Below are positions 1,956 to 63,702 of a DNA stretch of 64,000 nucleotides, one piece after another (position 1 is the stretch's first letter; each line of letters opens with the position of its first letter). The stretch comes from Rhodosorus marinus CCMP1338. Its lineage: Eukaryota; Plantae; Rhodophyta. The DNA lies in contig JAMWBK010000002.1 of the NCBI GenBank assembly GCA_029953675.1, forward strand, positions 2,046,001-2,110,000. Direction: 5' to 3'. Under the pieces are notes generated by a model. It saw only the letters and a program-made list of their open reading frames with translations, did no database searches and was not told where the DNA came from. The position numbers were made by a program, and so were the translations under genes.

Positions 1956-3098
1956 ATGTTGAGGAGGCTGGCTGTTTCTGAGGTGGGTGGATGGTCGTAT
2001 GGAGTCGTGTCTGGGAGGCGCGGGTTGTTTAGTAGCTCTCGGTTGTTTGAGGGAGTGAAGAAGGGTGGTAGTGGTGATAAAGTTGCTGAGAGTAGTGATG
2101 TTGAAGATCAGGGTAAGGAAGTGGCGGATAAGAAGTTGAAGGACGAGTCTGGTGGCGTGATTGCCAAATCTGAGCGTGAAAAGTCTGGAACGGGAACAAA
2201 AAATGAGGCGGACGAGGGACCTCAGGGGGAGAAGAAGAAGACCGCAGGGGCTGGGAAGCCGGAGACTACGAAGACCGCTGAGAATGAAGAGAAAACCGGA
2301 ACGGAAGGAACTGAAACTGGCAGAGATCCTCAGGAAATTGCACTAGAAGGTGTGAGACATGCTATAGATAAGAAATTGGAGCCACTCCCATCGAGTAGGT
2401 TCCAGAAGGGTGGTCGATTTGTGTGTGTGGAGAACGTCTCGCGCTTTGCGTCGCGGGAGGACCTGCTTTACTTTTTCAAACCTCATAGAATTGGCGCTGA
2501 GTTCTTCCGAAGATGGAAAGACGAGGATTCCGGAACATCTACTTGGTGAGCGCAGAATGGATTCCAAGCTGGAAAATGCCCGAACTATCCACCATTCTAA
2601 CAAGCCTCTTTGCGAATCTCGTTCATAGGTTTGTGAGAATGAGTGACGAAAATGCTGCCAAAGAGTTCGTAAAAGACACAAAGAATGCCTACATAGGCTT
2701 CAACAAGGTAAAACTAACACAAACTGATGAAGGCACCGTGAACAAAGAACTTGGGGATATGTTTATCGAGCGCAAGTCGCTTGGGCGAGTCGTTGCAATC
2801 AAGAATGCACCCCCAAGTATTCAGAGTTCACATCTCGAAGCTTTCTTCGAAGGCTACAATCTAAAGAGCGTAAAAAAATCGAGTAGAATGGATCCGGTAA
2901 GCAAACCATTGGCAAAGTCATGACCTGTCCTGTCGCTTCTCAAAGTCCTGACGACCAGTCTCGCTTACCCGTTTTCCTTTTATCCATTAGTCCACCCTGT
3001 TCGCAACCTTTGAGAATATTGAGGATGCACAGAGAGCCGCTAGAGAACTTAACAAGGGACTGGTAATGGACCGCCAAATCACCATCAGAATTTTGTAG
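1956..3098 (+). CDS. Probably mitochondrion-targeted protein with two RRM-like domains; 3 exons
   Basis: MLRRLAVS...RRGLFSSSRLF presequence-like start; RFVCVENVSRFASREDLLYFF and RVVAIKNAPPSIQSSHLEAFF RRM-like segments; introns ~2546-2629 and ~2897-2988 give an open frame ending ATFENIEDAQRAARELNKGLVMDRQITIRIL*. Confidence 0.7.
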
Positions 3099-3407
3099 AA
3101 CTGCGAGGCGGAACAAGACAAACACGGGGTGCTATTAGTCTTGGAAAATGTCCTCTCTCGATTCTTCAATCTCGTTGAGGCCCACATACAGGGACACTGA
3201 GCAAATGCCGAAAGCGTAGCATTCTGAGGCTTGTCAAACTAAAACGATGAACTAGAACTGGAGAATCAGGATCTGTACGATAGGAAACTTTGTTTGGCTC
3301 TTTTTATTTGCTTTCTGAGTTACAGTCGTAGAGAGCCGAACCTCCATAGTGAGAAGCTGGCGCTCAGCTTATCTCTCAAAGCGTTTCTGCATAACTGCTC
3401 CCCCTGT

Positions 3408-4151
3408 TTATGGGCATGGCATGAGGGTGAGGTAGGAGAAGAAGCAGCAATTACGATATACATGTGCGCGCCTGGCCGTGAGGCAGAAGTTGATACAGCA
3501 CGCATTGCTGAGTCCTTTCATGAGCCAGACTTCGTGGTAGTTGGTAAGGCAGCATCCCTGCCTTCCGATGATGAACCTCTCGCTTGTTTGTAGCTGCGCT
3601 TGGTTCTCCCGGGACACTTCCCGGGCCACCTCCCTCGACAACGCCCTTGAGAAAGTCTTGGTCGGTCCGTCCCAGGTTGGAAGAGCGTCCTCGCAGACTC
3701 CAACGTAGATCTTGGAAGTGCCATAGCTGTAGAGAGAAGTTCCATCATGGAGTCCAAAGTTGCCTCCGTTGGATCCGATTTCAACGCTGATGCAACTGGA
3801 GCTGTCAAGGTGGATCATGATCTCGTCCATTGATGCGTTGGTCGGTATACCCCTCTTGTCGATGACCTCGGAGTACAGGACGTCGCTGCCGGGGTGAGCA
3901 GAAAGGTATGAGAATCGGACCTTCGAGTCATCAGTATCCAGCACGTAGGCGAAGGCGATGGATTCACCAGAGCTGGACACAGACTCCCTGAGCTCTGCGA
4001 CCTTTGCATCTTTCTCCGCTTCCGTGAAAATTTCAATATTGAAATGAGACTCGGGAGGAATGTGCACTGTTGTCTTGGACGCAGCCATATTCAGGGCCAT
4101 TACGATCAACAGGACACTGGTCCAGAGGCTTACAACGCTCTTCATCATCAT
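3408..4151 (-). CDS. Secreted protein of unknown function with Cys-rich C-terminal module
   Basis: 247-aa intronless ORF; hydrophobic N-terminal signal peptide (SVVSLWTSVLLIVMALNMAAS); 8 Cys in the last ~50 aa. Confidence 0.7.
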   Translation of the reverse strand: MMMKSVVSLWTSVLLIVMALNMAASKTTVHIPPESHFNIEIFTEAEKDAKVAELRESVSSSGESIAFAYVLDTDDSKVRFSYLSAHPGSDVLYSEVIDKRGIPTNASMDEIMIHLDSSSCISVEIGSNGGNFGLHDGTSLYSYGTSKIYVGVCEDALPTWDGPTKTFSRALSREVAREVSRENQAQLQTSERFIIGRQGCCLTNYHEVWLMKGLSNACCINFCLTARRAHVYRNCCFFSYLTLMPCP

Positions 4152-21093: not shown

Positions 21094-23337
21094 ATGAATT
21101 GGCTTCTTCTTTACGTATCAAGCCAAGCTTTTGGCTTGAATGGAGCTACGGCTTGCAGAAGTCGAGCTTGCAGAAGTCGAGCTTGTAGCAGGTGGAATGG
21201 GTATAGGGTATCAGCTAGAGTTCCCGGAAGTGAGTACTATGAGGGTGTGATTGAAGACGACAACGACGAAGACGACGACGACGAAGATGATGATAATGAA
21301 GAAGACGAGCTAGATGGTTTGGACGACGAGGATCTAGAAGATGAGGACCTCGAGCTCATGATGGAAGGGCTTGGGAGAGAGTTTGAAGAAGATGTAGACT
21401 CTGTGGGATCTCCTGGTGAGGACACGCGAAGCGTTGGATCTGGGAAAAGCTTTCTGGAGAAGATGAGGAAACGGGTAGAGAATGGGTATGGCCCAAACGG
21501 TGGCGATGAAAAGGGTTCATTTAGAAGGCAAGCGCGGAACTCCGGCAGACAGTCCAGAGAGCCAATTTCCAAGGATTCAAACTCGAGCAGGCCCGAACCC
21601 CGCTTCCGCTCTTCGCTTACTCGCAGAACAACGCGGAGAAGAAATCGGAAACCTGAGCCTGATACGCAGTCGAACTTAGCGGATCCTGAGAACTTGCAAT
21701 CACCAGAAGGTCCGAAAAGCAGCAGGGACTCATCAAAGAGTCCCAGAAATCGGAAGGGCTCCAGTCGACGTGCTCAATCAGCACCTGGCTCATCCCCGGG
21801 GGAGTCGGATGATGCAGACTTACCAGAGCTCAGCGACGCCTTGAAGCGAATTATGGGCGGAGGCGGAGCTCCCGACTCCAGCTCCACAACCTCTGATTTG
21901 ACAGTGGTCGATCGCAATGACCCAGAAAAGAACGAGAAGAGTGCTGGAAAGAGCGTTGATGAACGAGGACCCTCGGAGGTTCCTAGACGGCCCAGCAGGT
22001 CTTTTGATGAGGACTTGAAGTCCAGTAGTCCCTTGCGACGGCGCTTACTCCAGCGCAATAGAGGGCGCGCAAGTGGGACCCCACCATTGGATTTGGGCAA
22101 GGGTCAAGCGGATGATGTGCTCGAGGAAGACGACGAGTTCGTCGATGACAACGACCCTGAAGATTTGGACGAGAAGACAAGAATGAACTGGATCGAGCAG
22201 CGTCGTAGGGAAAAGGAGACGAAAAAAAGGGAACTGCGGGGAAAAAATAGCAAGTACGACCCTCGGTTTCATGGTAGAATGGATCAAGACAGTCCTGAGA
22301 CCGTGATCGGGTACGGAAAGCGCGCTGAATCTGATGGTTGGAAAGGTGGGCGCCCCAAAGCGGACGTGACAGATGGAAGACAGGAGCTCACCGAAGACGA
22401 AATCAAGGAGATCCTGGAGAGAAGGAAAAACATCAACCGTAGTCGAAAGCGCGGACAGAGGGAAGAAGTGCAGGAGACCCCCAACCCTGAAGACGTATAC
22501 ACTTTCCAAGATGAGGACAACAGGGCAGTCCCAATTGGGGAGGTATTCCCAGATGAGAAAGTAGCGAACAGGTTTGCGTCGTTCCTAGGTGGAATGAACG
22601 ACCAGAAAGAGGACGAATCCAGCACGTTCTTCAAAAGAAAAGGAGTTTCACCTCTGTTCTCGGCGAAGAAGAAGAACAAGGACTCGCAGCCTCAGTACCA
22701 GGCACGCTCAAACTCCCCCAAAGCTGGAAGAAAATCGCCTGAAACTAGGAAGCGACCTCCTTCTCTTGGCCAGCAGCGCCGTAGCAGCCCCATACCGCAG
22801 CGGGGGATTGTCCAACCGCTTGAGGAAGAATATCCAGACTACGATCCCAATGATGACTATGCACGGAGGCCACTAGAGTGGGATACGAAGCTTGCCTCTG
22901 ATGCGTGTGCAACATGCAAAGGAGATGGGCTCGTGACATGCCCATATTGCCTTGCAGATGAATGGCTACCCCCTTTGGACGAGTACCTGTCCGATCCGGT
23001 TGGAGATGCTGTAAATCAGCCCGGCAATGATCCAAGTGTACGTTACGTGAAAAAGCCTGCGAGCCCTGAGATGCTGAAGAACCTGCGGGAGTTCTGGAAC
23101 CGGCCTGACTTGGCCATAGCAGGTGATGGATGGGCTCAGTGTCAGTTTTGCGCGAAGGGACAGAGCCTCTGCCAAGCTTGTGAAGGCTCAGGTAGCAGGC
23201 TACGGAAGGGGTTCGACTATGAAGCAGAAATGCGGGAGGCGTATCCTGAAGAGCTTCATGACGACGTCGGGCTTGACGACGAGGACGAACAGTACCTCTC
23301 TTTCAACAAACATTTCCACAGAAGACCGCAATTCTGA
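21094..23337 (+). CDS. Large putative plastid-targeted protein: acidic/disordered region plus C-terminal DnaJ-type zinc finger
   Basis: 747-aa ORF; Ser/Arg/Cys-rich transit-peptide-like start with an ACRSR repeat (15-nt unit); D/E tracts; CATCKGDG..TCPYC...CQFCAKG..LCQACEGSG. Confidence 0.8.
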   Translation: MNWLLLYVSSQAFGLNGATACRSRACRSRACSRWNGYRVSARVPGSEYYEGVIEDDNDEDDDDEDDDNEEDELDGLDDEDLEDEDLELMMEGLGREFEEDVDSVGSPGEDTRSVGSGKSFLEKMRKRVENGYGPNGGDEKGSFRRQARNSGRQSREPISKDSNSSRPEPRFRSSLTRRTTRRRNRKPEPDTQSNLADPENLQSPEGPKSSRDSSKSPRNRKGSSRRAQSAPGSSPGESDDADLPELSDALKRIMGGGGAPDSSSTTSDLTVVDRNDPEKNEKSAGKSVDERGPSEVPRRPSRSFDEDLKSSSPLRRRLLQRNRGRASGTPPLDLGKGQADDVLEEDDEFVDDNDPEDLDEKTRMNWIEQRRREKETKKRELRGKNSKYDPRFHGRMDQDSPETVIGYGKRAESDGWKGGRPKADVTDGRQELTEDEIKEILERRKNINRSRKRGQREEVQETPNPEDVYTFQDEDNRAVPIGEVFPDEKVANRFASFLGGMNDQKEDESSTFFKRKGVSPLFSAKKKNKDSQPQYQARSNSPKAGRKSPETRKRPPSLGQQRRSSPIPQRGIVQPLEEEYPDYDPNDDYARRPLEWDTKLASDACATCKGDGLVTCPYCLADEWLPPLDEYLSDPVGDAVNQPGNDPSVRYVKKPASPEMLKNLREFWNRPDLAIAGDGWAQCQFCAKGQSLCQACEGSGSRLRKGFDYEAEMREAYPEELHDDVGLDDEDEQYLSFNKHFHRRPQF

Positions 23338-59149: not shown

Positions 59150-59991
59150 CTTCCGTTGTCACCTGGAGCAAATAATCCACTCCAGGATCATACTATTCCT
59201 GGGGAAAAAGTTCTTCAATTTGCACGCTCCGTGGTCAGCCACTTCCCTCCCGAAACACGGAAAATACCATGCGGCTCCGCCAACAGGCCCGGCCCGGCGA
59301 GTGAAACCCATTTCCCATGTTGAGGCGGATCAAGCCGCTGCAGAGGCTTGGTAGATGATAGAACCAAGATGTGGAGAATTGATACTGAACGGATATTTGT
59401 TGATTCGATGACCTTGCCTTAAGATGTGATAGTCTGTTTGCACATCTTCAGATCGTGGTCGGGAGGATTTTGCGCCGCGATGAACGGGAGCTATGTACTC
59501 CCACCTACCAAGCAACTGGGTGCGACGGTTTTGCTGCTGGTACATGCACAACCGGAGGGTGGCGGGGTGGTGGAAAGCTCTCATCCCCGGATACCCGGGA
59601 CGTACCGGACAATGTGGGGTGTGTGTTTGAAACTGAGTCCCCAACTTGTGAGTGGAAAACTTGTTTACCGATTTAATGGCTTAGTCTGCGCTAGCAAAAG
59701 GCGTGGCTTACGCCGTTCAAACGGCAAGGCAGCGTTCGTGAACATTCCGTTTCCTGGCTTGGGGATCCACCGCTTAATCCGTCCAAAGAAACATTCTCTC
59801 GAGGCTGATTCCGTTCAGCAAGCCTCGGTGAGGGCGTAGGAGACTATTCATGCCCATCGAAAAAGTTCGATTTTTTCTATTTAAATATACTCTTGTGCAG
59901 GTCCAAGGTCCGAAACCACTGGGATGAAAACGTCAACCGACGCAAAGTTACACGTACACGGGTAGACAAGCAGTGCCCAATAAAACATATC

Positions 59992-62057
59992 CTACTCGAG
60001 TGGAACTTGCCCAAGTAGCTCGGCGTTGCTCTTAACCAATCGGGAATCAGCAAAGCTTACCGAAGGAAGAGAATCTTCAGACACTTGCGACTCCTTCTCC
60101 TCTCTTCGTCTCCGGAAGAAGTGTACAACTATGGGGTACAAGTGGATCACAATAGAAATCCCCAAGACGATGAGCTGAAATGCGAACAGAACCCAGGTGG
60201 TTTCGAGGGATACAGCGTCTGTCTCACTGCCCTCTACGTCCTGGTTCAGCATGGGTTCACAGCTCCCAACCCCTTGGAACCACTGAGCGTACAGGTCGTC
60301 ATTATAGCCTTCTTCTCTCAAGGAGACGAGCTCTTCGTCAATTGCTAGTCTTAGTGAGTGACGGTTTCGATGTACAGCAACTGCATAGTCCTCCAGTTGG
60401 AACACATCTCCGACAACAACTTTGTCGCACTCCTGAAAGGCTCGGTATCTCAGAGGAGGTGAGTCCCACACAATCGCATCAATCGAGCGATCCTCCAGGG
60501 CCTTAAACCTGTCATTGTTGTCCTCAATTACCGCCGGAATTGATTGGTCCTGAGCTCTGAGCCACTTGTATCCGCTCGTGTTTTCAGAGGATGTACCAAC
60601 TCTCTTCCCAGCCAAGTCATTTCGACCTGAGAATTGCGATGAATACGGTGGGCATATGTCAGACGTTGGGGTACTCCGGGTATACATCTCCATAAACAAC
60701 CGACGCTGCAGGCGCGCATTGAACAGTGAAATAGAATAAAGACGATATCTTGCACAAAGCCCATAGCGAAGAAGGAAGCATTTTGCTGGTGCTCACCTCT
60801 AATCGGTACTTGCAGGGACTGCTTTGTAAGAAACGCAGCGAGGTTGGCAGTATACGTTGCGATAATCACGAGAGAGACCATCATGAAAGCAAGTACTGTT
60901 AATCTCGCGGGCCAGCTACGGTAATTGATGAAAGGGTTTTGCAGAAAAGTAGTCCATGAGTGCCATTGCCCAAGAGGGAGCCCGTGCTTCGCGTCGATCT
61001 TCATGTGCGCGTTGCGATTCCTTTCGAACACCCAAATCGCAATTCCGACAAGAATCACAGTCGCAAACACTGAAACCCAGACATCCCAGGTAAACGGGTC
61101 TAGCATGCTAAGCGGATCCTTGCTAGTGTCCGTTGGTCTCAAGATCATAACTTCAAGCCCAGAGTAATAATACACGCGGCTGAAATCGACAATCGGCATT
61201 CGCTCGGATGTGACGGAGATGCACGCTGTTCCCATAAGATATTCTCCACTGGCCACCTTCTCTACCAAAATCGGGGTTTCCGCAATGCACACGATCTTGT
61301 ACTTGTCCCTCAAGCCCAACCTGCCGTAACCAACACAACAGAAGAGTTTGAGAAAAAAGAATGAGGCCTATGGGGAACACAGGCTCCAAACCTCCAAGGT
61401 CCGACCGCGCTCACCTGTCCATGATTTCCTCAAGTAGGTCTATAGAGTAACCACGAGGTCGACCTTGCTCTCGGGAGCCAAATAACTTGTCCTTATTTGG
61501 GGTGCAGAAGACGAAGGGTTCACATGGCTTGGTTCCGATAATAAACTCGTCCTCGTCCCCGGTAAGGCTAGGCGTAGGTGAGGGTGTACCTTCCCCTGGC
61601 CCCTGCCTCATGCTGGGGTGCAGGCGGAATTGACTTTGCTGTTCAGGTAGGCAAGACGACGGGCAACACATGTGAGAACTCTACTAATCTCCATTCCAAC
61701 GTTTCTCATCGCGAGAGTCTCCCCGTGAATGCAGGGCAAATTTCCTACCGTATCGCAAACGCCGCGCCTCGAGCAAAGGAATTCCTTGACGAGACCACGA
61801 GAAAACACGCTCTTACTTCCGTCTAGTGTATTCGGGCCATACGCCGATATTCTAGTAAACAACCACTTCAAGTCACTCGCGCTTAAGCCAGAAAACTCTT
61901 CCACCCCTGTCAACGCTGAGAGTGCTTGCAGATAAAAGTCCTCCACCATCCCACTAGCTTGCCGCCCAGTCCAATCTTCCTGTACGCTTGCATTCGCATA
62001 GAAAAGGACCAAGAGCAACACGACCACGCAGCCTTTTGCTCTCGCCATCTCGGTCAT
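59992..62057 (-). CDS. Ionotropic glutamate receptor-like ligand-gated channel lacking an ATD; 4 exons, ~570 aa
   Basis: Signal peptide; S1 (EPFV, GYSIDLL, ISVTSER..VDFS), M1 (PFTWDVW), pore loop, M3 ATYTANLAAFL (SYTANLAAF motif), S2 (DLAGKRVG, DAIVWDSP), M4; introns ~61646-61748, 61321-61414, ~60627-60796. Confidence 0.9.
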
Positions 62058-63702
62058 CGGGTTTCAAGAAAACCAACACACCTCGACCATAGGCCAGCAA
62101 AACTAAACACTCAGCCCCAGAAACGAATCTTAAGCAATTCTCAACACTCGCCGCCCTCTCCTAAATTCAAATGTAAGCGTATTTTCATGCACATCCAAAA
62201 CAGCAAAGCCAGTAGCCATGTCCCCTGTCCCCAACTAACGCCACAAACACACCCCCGTAGCCCACACCAAAGAAACTCAAAAAAACCCTCCCTTTCAAAC
62301 AAAAGAAGAGAACATGCTCTCACACTAAACAGCCTAACACAGCCTTTTCTCTCCCCATCATACCTTCCCCATCCCCAACTCTTCCTACCCACATCCCCAC
62401 CTACATCCCCCACCACAGCGAGCGCGACACCCCTTAGCTAGCTTTTTGGGCTCACATCTCTCTCTTTTCACGGCTTGAGCACAAGTATCTAACCGCCCGA
62501 AAGTAGCCAATTGTGTCCTTATTTTAGAATATATTTCCAAATCTTGACGTACTGTTAGAGTCTAAATCACTTACGAGATTTTGTTCGCATCTCTACCACT
62601 TCAATCGATTACCTCCGAGAGCGGGGGTCGCGAGGGCGTGGTAGTTCCCCGTGGGCCTTGGTGAATTGTGGTTGTTAATCGTGACAGACTGATTGGGATT
62701 GCCTTCTTAGTCCTACCCTTGGATCCTCTCATGTTGGCTAGGCGACCGGTGGCTCTGTAGACAGGTTGAGTTTTCGCCTTCCGCTGAATGGCACCTAGTC
62801 TCTGTCGATTGTGCAACAATGCTCTATGATTGCGGAGGGACTTGGAGTCCCTCGGTGATGCTAGAATCGTGTGTTTCTTTGAAGGAACAGATCTGCGGGT
62901 TGGCGGCGGTACAGGTGAGGTACGCACGAGCCAGGTTCATCTGAATTGTGCGCGCAAACGGGCGCGGTACCGGGCCCTCCAATGACAGTTGCTCTACAAG
63001 AATTTTCCTTGCGCTCCCAGTTTGACTCTAGACTGCATACCTAGGTAGATGCACAGCCCAGTGCACACCATTCGATACCCTTGGCAACTCGGACCTGGCA
63101 CAGCAGCTCAAAGACAGTCCAAAAAAAGGGATGATAGAACGCTGTGCGAATCTATTTCTGGATCCTACCTCCTTAACCTAGACCTCAGCTTCCTATTGGT
63201 CATCCCTCCCTTTGCCAACCAAGAAGGGGGATCAATCATTTTCACCGGACAAGTGACTGTTTCTGTTTTGACAAAAACAGAATCGTGATGCGCAATGGTT
63301 ATTACTCCAATTTCTCCTTGCTCGAACTGTGCCCCAAAAGTTCAGCCTTTTTTTTGGTTGAGGAAATTATTATGATAATACTTGAGTTTTTGTTTTTTTG
63401 TTGTTGCGCGGCTAACTATTGGTGAGAGCTACTTTCTTTTCTTTTGGTATTTTTTTTTAAAGCCTTTCAAAAGGCGTGGAAGGCAATGCGGCCATATCCT
63501 GTCATCATTTTGCTTTCTTTTTTCTTCGAGGACGTCTGCTCAGTATATACGTATATATATATATGAAAAACAAAATAGGGGGTAAAAAAGTTTCCATTGT
63601 GATTGCAATGGTAGTTGGCCCTCGTCGTCACCCCAGAGTTACCTGGTAACTGTTGTTTTCGAAGAAAGTTTTGGACATCAACATCTGATGAGGAAAACTG
63701 AC

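Follow-up and report, generated by a model that had tools for sequence, protein, structure and literature searches.

We find that the gene at positions 59992-62057 on the minus strand of a 64-kb stretch of Rhodosorus marinus DNA (contig JAMWBK010000002.1; this whole stretch is hereafter the window, and all coordinates are positions in it) encodes a protein that is, judged by its sequence and predicted fold, one subunit of a eukaryote-type channel of the ionotropic glutamate receptor (iGluR) family lacking the amino-terminal domain (ATD). Taken as a whole, the reading we prefer, that this ATD-less eukaryote-type iGluR subunit forms an amino-acid-gated cation channel, is likely to be right. The protein is arranged, from its N-terminus, as a signal peptide, an extension matching no known family, the segments S1-M1-pore-M3-S2-M4, and a tail.

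Receptor architecture and gene model

Assignment to the receptor family draws on several comparisons. Pfam matches to the protein fall in the interleaved order typical of iGluRs (Lig_chan, 5e-23; SBP_bac_3, 3e-14; and Lig_chan-Glu_bd, 8e-7, just under the cutoff), and the best match to a solved structure is GluA2 (1.9e-24), with aligned residues 139-360 (S1 through M3) and 417-515 (S2 and M4). An AlphaFold2 model built from a 23-sequence alignment has a mean predicted local distance difference test score (pLDDT) of 68, with the ligand-binding domain (LBD) at 85-90 and helices at the positions of M1 (256-281), the pore helix (292-305), M3 (314-347), and M4 (493-538). Foldseek matches this model to AMPA-receptor structures of the LBD and transmembrane domain (TMD) at 5e-24. 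Together, these results put the family match far beyond chance, and the Pfam order, GluA2 alignment, AlphaFold2 model, and Foldseek match all contain a ligand-binding clamshell split by the channel in the order S1, M1, re-entrant pore loop, M3, S2.

The membrane segments and cysteines are of the eukaryotic type. The best 19-residue Kyte-Doolittle window after S2 scores 2.34, compared with less than 0.5 in the bacterial types, and aligns to M4 of GluA2. Within the M3 gate motif ATYTANLAAF, the Tyr of Y334 is shared by 16 of 16 animal and 17 of 17 ATD-less eukaryote sequences and the Asn of N337 by 16 of 16 and 12 of 17, where bacterial types have Phe and Thr, Ser, or Ala, respectively. C419 and C475 align with the lobe-2 disulfide C718-C773 of GluA2, the bond itself being predicted; the C419 column is Cys in all animal (16/16) and plant-type (2/2) sequences and in 15 of 17 ATD-less eukaryote sequences, and most bacterial sequences have Gly there. 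An earlier note on this DNA had described the S1-M1-P-M3-S2-M4 order and quoted a set of motifs, all of which we located in the 563-aa protein, including VTSER, which contains R218, and IVWDSP, which contains D407.

Pfam returned no match to the ATD family ANF_receptor (PF01094) in the 563-aa protein, and residues 24-132 matched no Pfam family and no PDB chain (phmmer), with an E-value limit of 10 in both searches. Two codons ahead of the ATG the frame is closed by a stop, none of the three minus-strand frames over the other 1.9 kb of the window upstream resembles an ATD, and the leader of a related transcript (~300 nt), which is collinear with the genome, is closed in all frames and holds no upstream ATD exon. 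The earlier note's statement that the protein has no ATD therefore stands, and the protein is not a canonical plant glutamate-receptor-like (GLR) protein or animal iGluR.

In place of an ATD, the protein begins with a predicted signal sequence, judged by eye, with a basic n-region, the hydrophobic core VVVLLLVLF, and a cleavage site between ANA and S at about residue 23 (62057-61989). From there to S1, which starts at about residue 133, lie some 105-108 residues. The earlier note had put ~130 unrecognised residues between signal peptide and S1; they do indeed match no family, and ~130 is the count from the start of the protein, the distance from the signal peptide being ~108. The AlphaFold2 model of this extension, for which only three near-identical sequences exist (residues 24-132), has three helices (31-50, 60-72, and 82-98; pLDDT 50-69) followed by a disordered linker (102-132). 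The extension is conserved within Rhodosorus and has no counterpart in the other short receptors compared, and a BLASTP comparison with the ~130-aa N-terminus of a receptor from the rotifer Adineta gave nothing meaningful. On these comparisons, the ~80-residue helical piece and its disordered linker are specific to the Rhodosorus lineage. A reading of SASDLKWLF...DGSKS as an EF-hand was rejected by eye, since the loop positions do not fit.

The coding sequence runs from an ATG whose first base is 62057 to a stop codon whose last base is 59992 and comprises 1692 nt (563 aa) in four exons, separated by three GT-AG introns of 110, 94, and 170 nt. Its reading frame is spread across four overlapping minus-strand open reading frame (ORF) pieces, which are joined by removal of the introns. 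The closest proteins are transcriptome-derived peptides from two strains of the unicellular red alga Rhodosorus marinus (Stylonematophyceae), which are 87-89% identical and bear out the red-algal origin that the earlier note had thought probable: peptides P0001 and P0260 from MMETSP0011 (561 and 564 aa, 87%) and P0264 from MMETSP0315 (562 aa, 88%). In addition, the JGI contig L001 (2340 nt) represents a transcript of the second, MMETSP0315, type; it reaches ~300 nt 5' of the ATG and 234 nt beyond the stop, and its alignment to the window falls into three blocks whose gaps correspond exactly to introns 2 and 3. For intron 1, the peptides of the spliced relatives P0001 and P0264 read GVC(D/E)T followed by Q over the exon 1/2 junction, and exon 1 of P0260 likewise ends in GVC(D/E)T. 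An alternative intron 1 of 62 nt (donor 61700), which would also keep the frame, is contradicted by the spliced peptides P0001 and P0264. The gene is thus transcribed and spliced as modelled in two close-relative Rhodosorus strains. The features of the locus, all on the minus strand, are as follows.

62058-62359, minus strand: 5' leader, collinear with the related transcript at 77% identity, with stops in every frame
61749-62057, minus strand: exon 1, residues 1-103, signal peptide and lineage-specific N-terminal extension, with C95 and C101 at its end
61639-61748, minus strand: intron 1, 110 nt, GTAGGA...AACAG; only an excised length of 2 mod 3 brings the two sides back into frame
61415-61638, minus strand: exon 2, residues 104-178, Pro/Ser/Thr-rich linker (~104-132, predicted disordered) and the start of S1
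61321-61414, minus strand: intron 2, 94 nt, GTGAGC...GGCAG; missing from transcript L001, in which blocks 62359-61414 and 61323-60796 abut
60797-61320, minus strand: exon 3, residues 178-353, the remainder of S1 (R218 at 61202-61200), M1 (256-281), pore helix and filter, and M3
60921-60968, minus strand: pore loop QWHSWTTFLQNPFINY, residues 296-311, with Q305 at 60941-60939
60831-60860, minus strand: M3 gate motif ATYTANLAAF, residues 332-341, read straight from the sequence
60627-60796, minus strand: intron 3, 170 nt, GTGAGC...TCTCAG; missing from L001, in which blocks 61323-60796 and 60628-59758 abut
59992-60626, minus strand: exon 4, residues 353-563 and stop, S2, M4, and a conserved basic/acidic cytoplasmic tail ending in LLGQVPLE
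Within exon 4, minus strand: S2 residues N368, T369, and S370; W406 and D407 at 60468-60463; Y433; C419 and C475
60124-60207, minus strand: M4, residues ~493-520, a hydrophobic helix followed by RRRR
59758-59991, minus strand: 3' untranslated region (234 nt or longer), which the related transcript matches collinearly

A tblastn search of the 64-kb window found no paralogue elsewhere in it; the receptor gene is single-copy within the window, contains introns, and is nuclear. Synonymous divergence (dS) between this gene and L001 is 0.32, and the window represents a third Rhodosorus-like lineage. The ratio of nonsynonymous to synonymous divergence (dN/dS) in the same comparison is 0.19 over residues 113-563, and by region it is 0.07 for M1-M3, 0.11 for M4 and the tail, 0.17 for S1, 0.23 for S2, and 0.33 for exon 1. 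The channel is under purifying selection. The Pro/Ser/Thr-rich linker, with a dN/dS of ~2 from few sites, is effectively unconstrained. Public transcriptome sets have for years included the Rhodosorus sequences, which have drawn no comment.

The Rhodosorus sequences also hold three smaller features of the transcript and tail. L001 keeps intron 1 (positions 613-722, corresponding to 61748-61639) even though introns 2 and 3 are gone, which would truncate the protein after the N-terminal extension, the product being called as a 137-aa peptide (P0039); this could be unprocessed RNA or regulated retention. The 5' leader contains a 29-codon upstream ORF (MATGFAVLDVHENTLTFEFRRGRRVLRIA, then a stop) at 62219-62130 on the minus strand, whose peptide sequence is conserved in L001 and which may be regulatory. 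Finally, tail residues 521-563 (60124-59995, minus strand) are strongly conserved over the three Rhodosorus lineages, including RRRR, SLPSVSFAD, and the terminal LLGQVPLE, a pattern that hints at a trafficking or docking motif.

Pore, ligand site, and proposed function

Alignments with GluA2, kainate- and delta-type receptors, and GluN1 all place Q305 at the Q/R/N site (Q586 in GluA2; Asn in GluN1), with N306 at +1 and P307 at +2, where nearly all animal receptors have Gly. The earlier note had set Q-N at this site, followed by Pro: the three residues are as it described, and the site is Q305 alone. N306 as the Q/R/N-site residue was rejected on the strength of the same alignments. The pore (M2) helix of the AlphaFold2 model ends at Q305, in agreement with GluA2, in which the M2 helix carries the Q/R/N residue at its tip. 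The pore loop is identical in all Rhodosorus sequences. Its filter, FLQNPFINY, contains neither GYG nor GFG, as the earlier note had said of GYG, and the residue at its +4 position, I309, is not acidic. In two distant iGluR classes, Gln or Asn at the Q/R/N site raises Ca2+ permeation and an Asp at +4 is needed for polyamine block (PMC12226733). By analogy, the Rhodosorus pore probably conducts cations non-selectively, Ca2+ included, and is probably only weakly blocked by polyamines: it should not be K+-selective because it has no TxVGYG filter, Ca2+ permeability would probably be appreciable because of the Gln at the Q/R/N site, and strong polyamine block is unlikely because no acidic residue stands at +4.

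At the ligand site, the residues that contact the amino acid backbone are kept (GluA2 position in brackets; residue map from PMC12226733): Y167 (450), S213 (480), R218 (485), T369 (654), and D407 (705), the one exception among the contacts being C211 in place of P478. The backbone-contact residues and the gate motif are invariant among the Rhodosorus strains. The protein thus very probably binds an alpha-amino acid, as judged from these residues. Its side-chain pocket consists of N368 (653), S370 (655), W406 (704), and Y433 (732). Published patterns are Gly, Ser, or Thr at 653 with T655 and Y732 for glutamate, and S653 with a hydrophobic residue at 655 and F732 for glycine and D-serine (PMC12226733). 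The pocket fits neither pattern, so the preferred agonist cannot be named. We considered glycine or D-serine from the likeness of W406-D407 to the W-D of GluN1 and GluD; S370 and Y433 point the other way, so we make no ligand call.

In the mechanism we propose, the signal peptide would direct the protein into the secretory pathway, and four subunits would assemble through their LBDs and membrane domains without an ATD layer. The outward-facing S1/S2 clamshell would bind a free alpha-amino acid, with R218 predicted to hold the alpha-carboxylate, S213 and T369 to contribute backbone contacts, D407 to hold the alpha-amino group, and Y167 to act as a lid. Closure of the clamshell would pull on the M3 gate ATYTANLAAF and open a cation pore whose narrowest point is predicted to be formed by Q305, N306, and P307. 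Our best guess for the agonist is a broad amino-acid profile as in GluR0, AvGluR1, and plant GLRs, and the likely cellular role would be sensing of external amino acids leading to depolarisation or Ca2+ entry. Amino-acid gating and possible Ca2+ permeability, both proposed in the earlier note, are reasonable predictions.

Relatives and alternative explanations

A full HMMER scan of 1.84 billion representatives returned 4509 matches at E<=1e-3. Outside Rhodosorus, identity does not exceed 36%, and bacterial GluR0-type proteins (340-400 aa) have the top raw similarity, with 33-36% identity. A word-indexed search with the protein and a 16-sequence profile, in which 8000 candidates were scored, returned no close homologues from other red algae, a result that falls short of showing absence. 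We sorted the best 150 matches, together with named animal and plant-type sequences, by the length preceding S1, the hydrophobicity following S2, and the pore motif. This separated 105 proteins of the GluR0 type (340-400 aa, no M4, TVGYG in many of them); animal, plant-type, and other receptors that carry an ATD; and a third kind that, like the Rhodosorus protein, has M4 and lacks both ATD and GYG. Among the best 150 matches, this third kind has at least 17 other full-length members, from the green algae Tetrabaena socialis and Bryopsis sp., the Amoebozoa Phalansterium and Mastigamoeba, Pygsuia (Breviatea), Paulinella (Rhizaria), and Pyxidicula, among others.

We built neighbor-joining (NJ) trees with a simple distance correction from 331 columns that largely exclude M4, with 200 bootstraps; the trees are unrooted and contain very long branches. 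The Rhodosorus clade grouped with the M4-bearing receptors in 200 of 200 replicates and stood at the base of the M4-bearing cluster in the full tree. Its commonest sister, five ATD-less sequences of green-algal, amoebozoan, or unnamed source, appeared in only 40 of 200, and no sister group was supported. From this grouping and the unsupported sister, the Rhodosorus protein is an isolated long branch within the eukaryote-type receptors. Grouping with the M4 type was recovered in 97 of 100 replicates from the TMD alone and in 63 of 100 from the LBD alone, and bacterial types were joined in 30 of the 100 LBD-only replicates. The two domains differ likewise in identity: for the LBD the mean is 31% to the bacterial type (maximum 39%), 26% to ATD-less eukaryote, 21% to animal, and 21% to plant-type sequences, whereas for the membrane domain it is 23% to the bacterial type and 27-29% to the eukaryote-type groups.

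GluR0 has neither ATD nor M4; its filter is of the TxVGYG type, and it selects for K+ (PMC11479355). Proteins of this type share with the Rhodosorus protein the missing ATD, a similarity of up to 39-40% in S1 and S2, and near-identical strings at the ligand contacts (IDAIVYDSP for the Rhodosorus IDAIVWDSP; DLxGKxVGT). They differ from it in M4, in the QNP filter, in the gate (YTANLAAF rather than FTAxxTS), and in the eukaryotic disulfide cysteines, and the Rhodosorus protein has an M4, has no TxVGYG filter, and groups elsewhere in the tree. GluA2 and plant GLRs have in common with it the fold of the LBD and TMD, SYTANLAAF, M4, and Gln at the Q/R/N site, as in unedited GluA2; they differ in having an ATD of ~400 aa, in an LBD identity of 21%, and in the filter, in which the Rhodosorus protein has Pro for Gly and no acidic residue at +4. 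It cannot be counted among plant GLRs: it has no ATD, and the plant-type sequences P0038 and P0041, at 21% LBD identity, joined its sister group in only 2 of 200 replicates.

Most insect ionotropic receptors (IRs) have no ATD, an N-terminus of ~200 aa without recognisable homology, a retained M4, and no K+ filter (PMC2924276). The IRs are an animal-specific offshoot of which most lack some or all glutamate contacts, whereas the Rhodosorus protein keeps R218, S213, T369, D407, and Y167. The IR25a-type sequences P0008, P0024, and P0035 were never its sister among the frequent bootstrap sister groups, and only the architecture is held in common. The ATD-less receptors of protists and green algae (e.g. 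Bryopsis GMH41002.1, Tetrabaena PNH08131.1, and EukProt peptides) also have no ATD and no GYG, and share an M3 of the YTANLAA type, the LBD disulfide cysteines, and M4 with a tail. In these the signal peptide directly precedes S1, with 2-57 residues before S1 compared with ~130 in the Rhodosorus protein; identity is 23-29%, and the pore loops are unrelated in sequence. A literature search for earlier accounts of protist iGluRs without an ATD turned up just the insect IR case and general counts of algal GLRs, and a search by red-algal genus name found none in the supplementary files of a recent eukaryote-wide iGluR phylogeny, which covers Chloroplastida, Cryptista, Amoebozoa, and Discoba.

On this comparison, the earlier note overstated its case in writing that the protein fits neither known pattern and has a special intermediate architecture: that no known pattern fits does not follow, because the build is shared by most insect IRs and, within the best 150 matches, by 17 or more further proteins, protist and green-algal receptors among them. 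Its notion of an intermediate survives in a narrower sense, in that the LBD is nearer the bacterial GluR0 type and the pore, M3, and M4 are eukaryote-type, although the architecture is not unique. The findings that the note had named as decisive did not go against it: there is no ATD exon, the gene is expressed, and the protein does not fall inside any described family with the same pore sequence. By its sequence, the Rhodosorus protein is best classed as a new and isolated addition to the short M4-bearing eukaryotic iGluRs, a loosely known set.

Some points weigh against an amino-acid-gated cation channel. The pore is modelled with only moderate confidence (pLDDT 63-70 at residues 291-320), and secretory targeting comes from inspection of the sequence by eye. 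Asn at 653 together with Trp at 704 is a combination outside the published ligand rules, and the filter is Pro-bearing and one residue shorter than that of GluA2, so that the AMPA/epsilon selectivity rules may not transfer. Furthermore, an intact-looking pocket does not keep some iGluR relatives from being constitutively open or dependent on partners. We regard it as unlikely, though well short of negligible, that the subunit is not by itself an amino-acid-gated channel of the plasma membrane and instead depends on a partner, resides in an internal membrane, or is a leaky or non-conducting sensor. Many iGluR family members are obligate heteromers or auxiliary-dependent, and here the ATD that steers assembly is missing, the QNP filter is unusual, and the conserved tail ending in LLGQVPLE suggests regulated trafficking. 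However, a single gene family was recovered from Rhodosorus, all close matches fall into two clusters of alleles or strains, and no paralogue lies in the window; every backbone-contact residue and the gate motif are intact and do not vary among strains, and ATD-less or simple receptors of bacteria and rotifers work as homomers.

The similarity to bacterial GluR0-type proteins, which at 33-36% identity is the highest outside Rhodosorus, could also be taken to indicate a bacterial contaminant, a recent transfer from bacteria, or a decaying pseudogene. We consider this highly improbable: the gene has three GT-AG introns, two of them shown to be removed in mRNA, eukaryotic neighbours, and a G+C content like that of the window, and it encodes a eukaryote-type M3, M4, and disulfide cysteines in an intact frame with a dN/dS of 0.19. 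The same similarity bears on the idea that the protein is a relic, an early-branching eukaryotic iGluR that diverged after the gain of M4 and loss of the K+ filter and before fusion of the ATD, and thus lies below all ATD-bearing plant and animal receptors. Such a history would explain why the LBD is nearer the bacterial proteins without M4 (mean 31%, maximum 39%) and the TMD the reverse, and it agrees with the basal position of the clade in the M4-bearing cluster of the full NJ tree and with the 30 of 100 LBD-only replicates in which bacterial types were joined. Yet that tree is unrooted, uses a simple correction, has very long branches (identities of 36% or less), and gives the commonest sister in 40 of 200 replicates; the bacterial-like strings in S2 recur in other protist receptors that lack an ATD, and a slowly evolving LBD explains the mosaic equally well. 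Loss of the ATD is moreover known, as in most insect IRs (PMC2924276). We therefore hold the relic interpretation to be quite doubtful.

If the relic interpretation were true, the protein would combine a GluR0-like LBD with a eukaryote-type pore, gate, and M4 that pre-date addition of the ATD, its Q-N-P filter would be a selectivity solution not seen in studied receptors, and it would offer an experimentally tractable stand-in for the bacterial-to-eukaryotic transition of this channel family. Under the preferred reading of an ATD-less eukaryote-type cation channel, the gain is modest, because the family, fold, and architecture are already known and the sequence is already public. Red algae have nevertheless barely been sampled in work on glutamate-receptor evolution, and the only red-algal report we found concerns uncharacterised GLR genes of Pyropia, which has three per genome and in which glutamate speeds spore release (PMC8969420). 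A compact, apparently single-copy, ATD-less receptor in a culturable unicellular red alga would be a convenient minimal subject for asking what roles M4 and a non-K+ filter play when no ATD is present, and whether sensing of amino acids by channels of this kind is ancestral in Archaeplastida.

Neighbouring genes and further observations

The receptor gene has a G+C content of ~50%, the same as the window, and its neighbours encode a cyclophilin, a C2H2 zinc finger protein, a SpoU methylase, a protein kinase, a Sec23/24 homologue, and a BACK-MATH protein. The longest unbroken ORF in the window, of 747 aa at 21094-23337 on the plus strand, has no Pfam match.

Among the homologues, several short or unusual receptors came to light. 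An 8.8-kb contig from JGI 3300037860 (L002) encodes an ATD-less, M4-bearing iGluR homologue of 481 aa (P0186) at positions 2543-3988, surrounded by tightly packed intronless genes with almost no Pfam matches (Glyco_transf_15, AIM24, and a faint Tectonin only), a layout that points to a giant virus or to a protist with a very compact genome. A rotifer homologue from Adineta vaga (P0168, UJR27771.1, 578 aa) has ~130 residues before S1, a GYG pore (AFVGYGVDF), YTANLASYLT, and M4, and represents another short architecture, here with a K+-filter-like motif. Two to five tandem receptor units are present in the Mastigamoeba protein P0040 (1315 aa), the Tetrabaena protein P0042 (1032 aa), and the plant-type proteins P0038 (2362 aa) and P0041 (1884 aa); these are probably not true concatemers but tandem arrays of genes that gene prediction has fused.

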